This document shows positions 1,269 to 31,300 of a DNA stretch of 64,000 nt, piece by piece. The DNA comes from Tubulanus polymorphus. Lineage: Eukaryota > Animalia > Nemertea. A model generated the notes under the pieces. That model saw nothing but the letters and a program-made list of their open reading frames with translations, was not told the DNA's origin and did no database searches. The DNA is taken from positions 12,202,275 through 12,266,274 of the forward strand of contig NC_134032.1 of assembly GCF_964204645.1 (NCBI RefSeq), given 5' to 3'. Position 1 is the first letter of the stretch. Each line of letters starts with the position of its first letter. The translations under genes and the position numbers were made by a program.

Positions 1269-1339
1269 ATGGCACTAGACAAACGGAGTAACATGGAACA
1301 GCGACAAAATTACAGTAACAAAGTTACGTCTTTTAAAAG
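1269..1339 (+). CDS. Candidate DYRK4 alternative start exon (MALDKRSNMEQRQNYSNKVTSFK-R)
   Basis: ATG-open frame to AAG|gtgagc phase-2 donor. An acceptor-like tgtag ends at 1203, and a second phase-2 donor CA|gtaagt lies at 1555 in the same frame (ATG 1533). Confidence 0.4.
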
Positions 1340-2477
1340 GTGAGCTCGGGAATCAAACTGTAGACTCTGTCGTACTCGGGGTAGGGTTCGGTTGGGACCG
1401 TAGATATTTGGTTGAGAATCCAAGAAATGTCTTCGCAAAATCAATCTTCGAGGATCATGCAACGGTGAATGCCTCACCGAATTGAAGATAAGGGAACTTG
1501 AAAATTTTGCTAAAGAAAATCCAAGTAAAATCATGTTGAAATCCAACTGTTTTCAGTAAGTATCAATACTGAGTAAGGTAGAATTTGATGTATTATATTA
1601 GGCCCCTAATGTTATTTCTATAGGTTTTTTTTTCAAATCTGGGGTTGTATTGCACGTGACTTCACTCCAAAAATGGTCTTAAATCCGACGAATGGCCCTA
1701 AGACTTTTGATTGCATTTTTAAACCAAAATGAGCTTACAATTGTATTAATTTATTTGAGTAATATTATAAAACCAAATAATTCGGATGAATACGACTGGT
1801 CAATTCATTAACAATAATGGGCTTAAATCTAAGTCTTCAGTGTTCAACTTGTCGCTCTTGGCTTTTTCTTTGAAAAAAAAACCTGCTGAAGTTAAGCTTG
1901 AATTCTTGCCCAATTGAATTTGCCGGAGTTGTATAATTCTCGGCTATTTTAAGGCCAAGGTTGGTTTTATATAATAAAAGGCAAACGGTGCTAATCAGCT
2001 TAACGGAGATTATCTCGTTAGGTTTTTCATAACAGTTGTAAATTGGAATATGGCGTCAGTGCATGGAATGAAAGATCATAAAACAAATAGCCTAGAAAAA
2101 GGGCTCTTTTTTAAATAGTCGATTTTTTCCCTTTTTTTTCATAAAATATAAGTGAATTATGAATTTTTTTCGCATTTTGCTCTTATCGTCGGATACGATA
2201 TTGTTCTTTATGTTAAACAATTATCGACAATTATCTGTTTCAACTTGACTTCAGAGGACATCGGGTGCCGGCCCTAGCTCGGCCAGTTTTGGCAGAACAT
2301 ACCGGATATCGGTCTATAAAGCACCAGAACGTACGGAGAGTCGAACTAAAACATTGATTTCGAACCGTATTGAATAATTGTCAAAGAGTATTCGTTGAAT
2401 GGATTACAAATGATAGAACAGAAATGTACTGTCGGAATTAACCGTCCTCTCAAGTAAAGTTAGATAAGATATTCTAG

Positions 2478-28300: not shown

Positions 28301-31300
28301 TTAAGGATTAATCCGATTTGGTGATAATGAATGTTTTATAAGCGTCGATGAAAAGAACGACGTTTGTTTTCTTCTTCTGAAAGAAACTCAATGAGAGACC
28401 GGACCGTTTAACGAGCAAATCTACGAAATAAATCCGCTTATAGAGCATTTATGTTTATATGATAGAGATTTCTTTAGTGAGTAGCGATAATTTCTTTGCT
28501 CGGAAAGTTAGGAAAAAATGAGTGGAAGTTTTCTAACACTAGCGCGTTAGTAGTAGGATTTTCCATATCCAGATTGCTCTAAAGATGGGAACTCATTTAC
28601 TCTAGTTACATCAGGAATTAACAATCCCTCTCTCTCTCATAAGGATTCCAGATTTCTGGAATTGGAATTTTTTGGAGTTCACCAGATATCAACGGAATCG
28701 CTCCAATTTAAGATACTAGAGATATCAACGGGCGGAATTTTTCGATCGCTAGTTCGCAGAAATTGTCACACACTACCGGAACTTGAAATATTGAGATCGC
28801 TCGAAAAAGGGATATTTTCCATCCTAAGTTAAACAGGAGATCCGGGTTACTAAAGGATATTAGGACTCACTGAGGAAATATCGGGACTATTCGCTCGCGT
28901 TCGAACATTTCTTTAAATCATAAACTTTCGAAAAATTTCATCATTATTTTCAAAAACGATGTGTTGAATTTGATCGGATGTTCATTTAAGTTCGATGTAT
29001 AATTCGTACTTTTTTCGTAATCTGCTCGGCGACGCCGGGCAACAACAATGCGCTGACATGATCGCTGCGGAAACGGAAAACGATCGCCATCGCCCGCGGC
29101 AACGATGTAAACGTAAACGACGGCGACACGTTAGTTTCAATATGCAGCAGGTATTTCATCGAGAAAACTGAAAAAAATAATTTAAATTAAATTTAAATTT
29201 CTTTTAAGTAGAAAATGTTTCCTAAGTTTTTATGTTATCTAAGTTTTTGTCTCAATTTTTTCAAATCCGCCCCTTACAATTCTACTCCATCCATAACAAA
29301 GCTACTATGCTAAGAATCCTCAAAATGCTATTTACTTTGAAATATTTTTGGAATCGTCAGAAAACCCTTAAAAGGGGTATTTTGGTGTCGTCAGAATACC
29401 CTCTAGAACCAATCCAACAACGGTTTTTGTAAGTTAGATATTTGCAATAATTGTGTTAGGGTATTTCTGGGAATACCTAAAAGTTATCGCACCCAAAAGA
29501 GCAGTTATGCTGATTAAACCAGTGTGTGCCTGTATAGGGGGGGGGGGGATGGCTGTAGATTATCTGCTAGGATAGATAGGGAGGAAGGAAGGGAGTGAGA
29601 GGGGATGGTTATATTCTTCAGCTCTCCAGAGTCGTTTTATCATGAATTATTTAATAGAGATCAAAGTCTATCTAGATCAGAGATTTCTCTATCGATATGA
29701 TTATGTTTTAAATCAAGCTATAAGCATATGAAAGTCATCACTCGGTCGCGGTTAGTATCATCGCTGTGAATATTCTTCAGACCGAGTTCATAGATTAAAA
29801 TGTTAAAATCAGTTACGTTTGAACGAGAAATTTACGCAATATCATCGGTTCAATTGTCTTCAAAATCATTCATAGCATAAGCAGTGTTTTCAGTGTGTTT
29901 GAAAGTCGTCACTCTTCGGGCACAGTTTGTATCGATGTGAATATTCTTCAGACCGAGTTCATAGATGGTTAGAATTAGTCTTGTTTAAACAAGAAAGTTA
30001 TTAACACATGAATCTCATTGTAATACATTATGAATAAAGAACTTCTGAGCGAAATCAACTTAACCAGCTGTAAAAGCATTACGAAAGATCGACATTTTGA
30101 GACGAGATTTCAAAACGTCATCAATCGGGCTATCACGAATGAATCTATTGTTTTTCATTCATTTTCCTTTTTTTTCGTAGAGTCCGGCTGCTGCTGCTGC
30201 TGCTGGACAGAACGCGGGAGGAGGTCATCATCACAGGCCACATCGATACAGCGACAGTAATAAACTGACCTCGAATAATCTGTTGATCACGAATTCTAAC
30301 AAACAGAAACAAACCAAAAATGGTTTCATCCACGCGGAAGTCCATCCTCAACCGGTGAGTGTGAACTTTATTTGTAGAAATTGATCATCTAGAAAACAGA
30401 TCACCCTATGACATCATCATCAGTCGGAATAAGCAAGCCAAATAAAATCCCGCCACCCCGTACGAATCTCCCTATGACATCATCAAATATGGTTGAATAT
30501 TGGGCTATAGATCTCCCTATGACATCATGAAATATAGTTTAGTATTAGGCTGCCTCCGAGAAATCTCTCTATAACATCATCATTATTTGTGATGATGTTG
30601 ACCATTCCACAGAAAAGATATATGTATGTAGCTGCCTCCAAAAATCCACCTATGACATCATCGAATTGATCTAATAAATTTTATAACCCAGCCTGTGTTC
30701 GTACATCTATAGTTCACCAAAATTCGTTAACTAAACTTTGTAATTGATAAATTGTTTAATTGCCTTCGTAGAAACAGGTCGCGATGGTTGCCCCGACGAC
30801 AGTGCAGACGACTTTACCCCAACTCAATACGGAGACGATGTCACGACCTTCGCAACATCACAAACACTACTCGTCGGAGACCTCGTCCACGTTGCCTCAT
30901 CTGAATAAAACGGGCGAATCGAATCTCACGCGACAACCGACGTTCGCCGTGTCGAGCAGTCAGGAAAAAATCAAACGAGACCCGTACGGAAACCGTCTAC
31001 CGATGTCTCCACAAGGTGAACTAACTACTCGGTCACACGACGCTCTCTTCAAACAGTTACACAGTTGTGTTAGTTTAATGTCCAAACCGGAACCCAGTTC
31101 CACAGTCGTGTGGGTTTTGATTTTGTCTATGAACCCAGTTCCACTGTCGTGTGGGTTTTGATTTTGTCTATGAACCCAGTTCCACTGTTGTATGGGTTTT
31201 GATTTTGTCTATGAACCCAGTTCCACTGTCAAGTGGGTTTTGATTTTGTCTATGAACCCAGTTGCACATTTGTGTGGGTTTCATTTGACTCTGGATCCAG

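Follow-up and report, generated by a model that had tools for sequence, protein, structure and literature searches.

In the nemertean Tubulanus polymorphus, transcripts of a DYRK4-like kinase gene very probably begin at any of many alternative first exons, which provide one enzyme with different short front ends. We put at roughly 80% the probability that transcription of the gene begins at several promoters within a region of ∼30 kb, each with a short first exon bearing an ATG. The first donor of each transcript would be spliced to the next shared acceptor. Starts upstream of exon 19250 (tier 1) are predicted to end in phase 2 and to include a shared exon of 36 residues, and starts between 19358 and 30181 (tier 2) would end in phase 0 and skip that exon. 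With the exons from 30181 onward common to every form, the kinase, its accessory region and its tail would be the same throughout, and variation would be confined to the N-terminal 3 to 76 residues. Each first exon would have its own promoter, and usage may differ by tissue or stage, as suggested by the anatomy of the gene and by reviews of the DYRK family (PMC7465136).

A class II DYRK gene with two shared acceptors

The window analysed here is a stretch of 64,000 nucleotides from the chromosome-scale contig C8 (positions 12202275-12266274) of the T. polymorphus genome (268 Mb, 77 contigs). A profile search retrieved two RefSeq proteins of this species, X1 (XP_074656418.1) and X2 (XP_074656419.1), and X1 was 100% identical to exons in the window. 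An earlier note on this DNA had identified a DYRK4-like kinase, and this identification was upheld by the RefSeq name of the gene as well as by its class II kinase motifs. In P0163, a Pkinase domain occupies residues 268-564 (E = 2e-54), and the catalytic motifs VAIK, HCDLKPEN and DFG are intact, as is the YTY of the YxY activation loop. The N-terminal accessory region (NAPA/DH box) is of class II and not class I: DYRK2 structures align from residue 198 (E = 1e-157), and the alignment with DYRK1A begins only at residue 246 (E = 1e-91). By its sequence, the gene belongs to class II of the DYRKs, with all of these catalytic motifs preserved. A homologue search with residues 28-205 of P0163 returned no closer nemertean sequence. 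A separate class II paralog on contig C3 resembles DYRK2/3; a tree built without vertebrate sequences, with its base unresolved, splits the gene from this paralog, which sits there on a long branch. The paralog (C3:190457-193723) consists of a single uninterrupted frame of 586 codons, as opposed to the 12 exons of DYRK4.

The exons of the gene and of its putative alternative starts are collected in Table 1. As had been proposed, the acceptor of exon 19250 calls for a donor in phase 2; the exon itself ends in phase 0 and is followed by exon 30181. It carries an in-frame internal Met at 19260 and is 68% identical to an exon of the ribbon worm Lineus (L030:16200-16311). A homologue of the 'SP' exon with a phase-0 acceptor was present in every locus mapped. 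In one lophotrochozoan contig (L009:3269-3420, with repeats to 3710), the 3′ half of the 'SP' exon and its donor occur in about four tandem copies.

Table 1. Features of the DYRK4-like locus in the window, and putative motif exons in other species
Feature	Position	Strand	Remarks
Candidate tier-1 first exon	1269..1339	+	23 codons, phase 2; donor score 6.8, strongest
Candidate tier-1 first exon	4702..4823	+	40 codons, phase 2
Candidate tier-1 first exon	6871..6920	+	16 codons, phase 2; donor score 4.5
Candidate tier-1 first exon	8202..8272	+	23 codons, phase 2
Tier-1 first coding exon	10889..10971	+	N-terminus of RefSeq isoform X1 XP_074656418.1
Nested intronless rhodopsin-like GPCR copy	12814..13914	-	one in-frame stop near 13387
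Candidate tier-1 first exon	16086..16186	+	33 codons, basic, phase 2
Nested intronless rhodopsin-like GPCR	16910..18010	-	intact 366 codons, 84% identical to 12814 copy
Shared tier-1 exon	19250..19358	+	109 nt, phase 2 in, phase 0 out; in RefSeq X1
Tier-2 first exon	21978..22034	+	19 codons, phase 0; conserved in Lineus, absent from RefSeq proteins examined
Tier-2 first exon (probable start)	28995..29150	+	phase 0; donor 29150 used by RefSeq X2 XP_074656419.1
First constant exon ('SP' exon)	30181..30354	+	phase-0 acceptor for exon 19250 and tier-2 exons
Remaining constant exons, class II DYRK kinase and tail	30772..36930	+	
Constant exons, part 1	30772-31015, 31811-31974, 32549-32826, 33174-33312, 33636-33717	+	
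Constant exons, part 2	34362-34595, 34993-35122, 35670-35869, 36207-36386, 36731-36930	+	
Putative M[FY]NxY[FY] exons	Lineus L030:21242-21268; Owenia L033:17269-17301; Lingula L032:1138-1167		strong AAG-GTAAG donors

Candidate first exons upstream of the shared exon

The earlier note had listed eight short units, and each of these indeed comprises an ATG, an open frame and a GT donor; the donor phase is 2 in six units and 0 in the other two. Its further descriptions also held: a purine is found at -3 in seven of the eight (8202 has T), the peptides are unrelated to each other (best pairwise score 26), and most units lie at the 3′ edge of CpG-rich patches, with a CpG drop across the donor in all except 1269, as is seen in real internal exons of the gene. 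One tier-1 unit, 10889, is independently documented by RefSeq isoform X1, in which its peptide is followed by exon 19250 and then by 30181. Its donor is the weakest among the eight.

We scanned for ATG-ORF-donor units in an unbiased manner, with an approximate generic donor matrix and 400 kb of the T. polymorphus genome as background. Upstream of 19250, at a donor score of at least 2 and with a purine at -3, the numbers of units in phases 2, 0 and 1 were 7, 2 and 0, where ∼2.5 were expected in phase 2. This excess moved with the thresholds, the p values ranging from 0.008 to 0.21 (binomial) and from 0.002 to 0.48 (Poisson). With a CpG-step filter, 5-8 units were observed and 0.2-2.7 expected (Poisson p ∼1e-4), p values that are optimistic and were discounted because the antisense strand is phase-2 skewed as well (0,0,4). 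Between 19358 and 30181, the unbiased scan revealed no phase-0 excess. The anticipated phase enrichment was therefore recovered in tier 1, as a modest phase-2 excess, but not in tier 2.

Additional evidence came from a coding model trained on the T. polymorphus genome, which gave candidates 1269, 4702, 6871, 8202 and 16086 in-frame scores of 0.03-0.09 bits per base (joint p ∼0.013). These scores resemble those of confirmed exons and exceed those of five decoys; a frame-specific test on the same five candidates was not significant (p = 0.2-0.4). The top per-base score in the set belonged to 6871, and that of 1269 was positive. The decoys, all of them low for coding and rejected, were 13184-13281 (antisense to a GPCR), 9972-10048 (a tandem repeat), 1427, 7745 and 24164. 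Unit 4702 has a further, weaker phase-0 donor at 4812. Contigs from sequencing runs covering 960-6950 (5,991 letters) were all of DNA type, and one from run X3 continued unbroken through the donor at 4823. Two variants were found inside candidate exons, both non-synonymous: a G>C change at 4765 in unit 4702 (DNA runs), which keeps the frame, and an A>G change at 6890 in unit 6871 (DNA run X1). The one possible RNA run yielded no contig on the locus, and run X4 gave nothing.

When the tier-1 peptides were compared with 71 homologue N-termini and 614 scanned units in seven loci, none gave a significant match. As this includes the RefSeq-confirmed 10889, missing homology is no argument against the five candidates. 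Matches of 16086 in the oyster and Owenia loci were weak and were rejected, the oyster match being without an ATG-donor unit of the right phase. RefSeq models are usually built on RNA-seq alignments, and RefSeq holds only two protein isoforms here, while by length any of the six other units would be listed. This silence nevertheless counts little, since the conserved exon 21978 is missing from RefSeq too. On the modest phase-2 excess and the weak coding signal, the five candidates are perhaps first exons. Allowing for one to two chance units, our best guess is that three to five of them, and hence most, would be used.

First exons between the shared exon and the 'SP' exon

Exon 21978 has an equivalent at L030:19150-19221 in Lineus longissimus, which belongs to a different nemertean class. 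The two are identical in 10 of 13 residues, with six synonymous third-position changes, and the Lineus copy ends in a phase-0 GTGAGT donor. It lies in the corresponding intron, 2.8 kb past the shared exon (2.6 kb in Tubulanus), and this pair was the highest-scoring non-trivial one across all scanned units. A resemblance between 21978 and a Mytilus coruscus N-terminus (19 residues each, the first three identical) was not significant and was not used.

The last unit had been placed at 29058-29150. Its donor and phase stood, and donor 29150 is the one used by RefSeq X2, because the Met-Gln-Gln start of this protein matches only 29142-29150. The start, however, should probably be moved, as the frame is open from an ATG at 28995 (RefSeq X2 begins at 29142); since the -3 base of that ATG is T, the ATG at 29058 may also serve. 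From 28995, the exon begins with the motif M[FY]NxY[FY] and carries a basic cluster. In Lineus, Owenia and Lingula, short phase-0 exons that precede the 'SP' exon start with the same motif; compared with these, the Tubulanus exon is lengthened to 52 codons and has gained the basic cluster. In 1.02 million six-frame positions the motif, which was defined after the hits had been seen, occurred five times, four of them at these exons, and around the exon start Lineus and Owenia agree in 22 of 24 bases. No annotated protein that we retrieved begins with any of these exons, and the motif exon did not turn up in the stretches from oyster, Patella, Lamellibrachia and Glandiceps, for which the 10 kb upstream of the annotated starts were covered. 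A Lineus-Lingula match at L030:22067 resembled a Lineus repeat and was dropped. By sequence conservation, the two Lineus exons (19150-19221 and 21242-21268) and those of Owenia and Lingula would be unannotated, conserved phase-0 first exons of DYRK4. Homologues of the peptides in related genomes, a check put forward in the earlier note, were thus obtained for 21978 and for the motif of 28995, but for none of the tier-1 peptides.

The same plan in other phyla

Lophotrochozoan DYRK4 orthologues (Magallana/Crassostrea X1-X14, Mytilus X1-X18, Lineus X1-X3, Lingula X1-X4) have the same shared exons and phase plan over a span of ∼20 kb. In Lineus, three RefSeq first exons, all of phase 2, lead into the orthologue of exon 19250. 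The oyster has one phase-2 first exon and an optional phase-2 cassette ahead of a shared exon of 109 nt, the same length as in Tubulanus, and six phase-0 first exons that join the 'SP' exon. Four phase-0 first exons are spread across 20 kb in Lingula, the order of phase 2, shared exon and phase 0 is retained in Patella and Owenia, and in the hemichordate Glandiceps a phase-0 first exon precedes the 'SP' exon. Mussels, scallops and clams have several N-termini apiece. Insect orthologues (mosquitoes, sand flies and beetles; P0096-P0162) likewise show several alternative N-termini on a common second exon.

As the two-level layout recurs in oysters, limpets, annelids and another ribbon worm, we regard it as old and real. 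In the number of first exons, the oyster gene is similar to that of Tubulanus. The two differ in distribution, most Tubulanus candidates (six) belonging to tier 1 and most oyster exons (six) to tier 2, and individual tier-1 peptides are not conserved among the orthologues. Because seven first exons have been mapped within 20 kb in the oyster, a total of about eight in Tubulanus, as originally suggested, is plausible; three of these are independently supported (10889, 21978 and 28995-29150), but the other five are individually unconfirmed. The accompanying idea that so many options would be unusual for DYRK4 did not survive, given that RefSeq isoforms run up to X18 in mussel and X14 in oyster. 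Nor is phase matching a strict requirement. The internal Met of the shared exon is conserved, and a Mytilus isoform uses the equivalent of Met 19260 as its start; non-coding or off-phase first exons could therefore feed this exon, and phase matching serves as a clue only.

Alternative readings of the tier-1 units

The scan and the coding scores bear directly on whether the gene might be smaller, with only 10889, 21978, 28995 and perhaps one more unit in use and the other tier-1 units representing chance ATG-GT pairs at the edges of CpG patches. We consider this unlikely. Some ∼1 to 2.5 phase-2 units are indeed expected by chance in 19 kb, RefSeq lists two isoforms, the five candidates are without homologues, and the antisense strand shares the phase-2 skew. 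At most settings, however, 5-8 units were observed where 1-4 were expected, and the joint coding score of the five (p ∼0.013) also speaks for their being real. Moreover, the confirmed unit 10889 combines a missing homologue with the weakest donor, and the annotation that lists two isoforms has overlooked the conserved 21978. A very improbable arrangement, in our estimation, is one with one or two promoters, where the units are mutually exclusive cassettes behind a common non-coding first exon and are chosen by splicing. Seven of the eight units have no strong acceptor within 400 nt upstream, the ATG of each unit comes after an in-frame stop, and long CpG-rich patches lie upstream of most. Individual units could still be internal exons behind a common non-coding exon, in particular 8202, because an acceptor-like, pyrimidine-rich site precedes it at 8028; the oyster does have its true phase-2 cassette in tier 1, and for several oyster proteins there are two or more transcript accessions, which would fit extra 5′ UTR exons.

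The region had also been likened to the UGT1 and protocadherin loci, a comparison that is largely refuted. Variable exons of those loci are large, similar, near-equal in length and duplicated, code for whole domains and share an upstream motif (PMC1885805). Several same-phase exons do lie upstream of common constant exons in DYRK4, and to this extent matching-frame variable first exons are joined to constant ones as in those loci, within each tier only. Membership fails because the eight exons are short, unrelated and without a common motif: their lengths run from 50 to 156 nt (16-52 codons) in two phases and two tiers, none is a duplicated, domain-coding exon, DNA similarity among them arises only via a dispersed repeat, and no 6-8-mers are common to the 400 nt upstream (exact matches only). 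To an array of duplicated variable exons with a common promoter-choice mechanism we therefore attach next to no probability.

Neighbouring and nested elements

The upstream neighbour of the kinase gene is an EF-hand gene on the opposite strand that ends ∼1.3 kb before the window. Its position places unit 1269 at approximately the upstream limit of the gene, and in view of its orientation no other plus-strand gene was found that could own the units. In locus L005, the upstream neighbours are a penta-EF-hand (peflin-like) gene at 7056-8750 (-), head-to-head with DYRK4, a TFIIH p34/Tfb4 gene at 4628-5422 (+) and a TPR-containing gene at 626-3166 (+).

Two antisense GPCR copies nested in tier 1 account for two CpG patches, and the copy at 12814-13914 explains both the patch there and the decoy 13184-13281. 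CpG-rich patches at 9100-9700, 20700-21350, 22600-24400 and 26500-28450 have no assigned coding exon and could be non-coding first exons, long 5′ UTRs or enhancers; the first contains a short phase-0 ATG-donor unit (9606-9626). One 38-bp minisatellite occurs three times in the 5′ region of DYRK4, at 7067-7694, 22344-22590 and, inverted, 27877-28086, and two of these copies directly follow candidate exons 6871 and 21978.

Downstream of DYRK4 lies a cluster of intronless peptide-receptor-like GPCR genes (40900-41886, 43240-44313, 44687-45043 and 49815-50906, all +). The copy at 44687 is cut by a TA run and adjoins LINE reverse-transcriptase fragments (45322-48097, -). Three blocks of ∼0.9 kb are duplicated at 91-97% identity: 51186-52095/52605-53515, 52094-52988/54192-55092 and 49962-50908/40943-41888.

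Discussion

That a gene can have many unrelated first exons is well established, and the T. polymorphus gene adds no new mechanism. Alternative promoters that yield distinct 5′ UTRs or N-termini are a recognised means of regulating DYRK expression (PMC7465136). By analogy, plectin would be the right counterpart of the DYRK4 layout, with a dozen alternative first exons that are spliced into exon 2 and place differing short N-termini on a common protein (PMC8468861). Both genes attach several short, unrelated coding first exons to a common exon, three of these being supported in Tubulanus. Genes of this type would also have a separate transcription start for each first exon and isoform-specific expression or localisation, features that are predicted for DYRK4. 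Plectin, an unrelated protein, differs in having a single shared acceptor instead of two tiers in different phases. Our literature search found no paper on the invertebrate DYRK4 layout, much of which is visible in RefSeq.

Because tier-1 peptides turn over between species, the multiple starts probably serve mainly to let expression be controlled independently, and the diversity of N-termini would in part be a side effect. The basic N-termini encoded by 28995 and 16086 may alter localisation, by analogy with mammalian DYRK4 splice forms; in work attributed to Papadopoulos in 2011, DYRK4 splice variants reportedly differed in localisation and activity. A further-reaching scenario, which we offer tentatively and consider less likely than not, places the origin of the two-tier DYRK4 system before nemerteans, molluscs, annelids and brachiopods diverged. 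At least one of its members, the phase-0 M[FY]NxY[FY] exon of 9-11 codons that is missing from all annotations examined, would have been retained in three phyla on account of its peptide, which would target the enzyme to a particular site or binding partner, and the exons of tier 1 would be replaced freely while the arrangement of phases stays fixed.

The findings point to annotation gaps at 21978 and 28995 in Tubulanus and at the corresponding exons of Lineus, Owenia and Lingula. In the micro-exon, conserved but unannotated, they also supply a defined motif for experiments. Of all DYRKs, DYRK4 is understood least, and the fact that several invertebrate phyla have retained its 5′ layout suggests that the choice of promoter and the identity of the N-terminus are important for this kinase.
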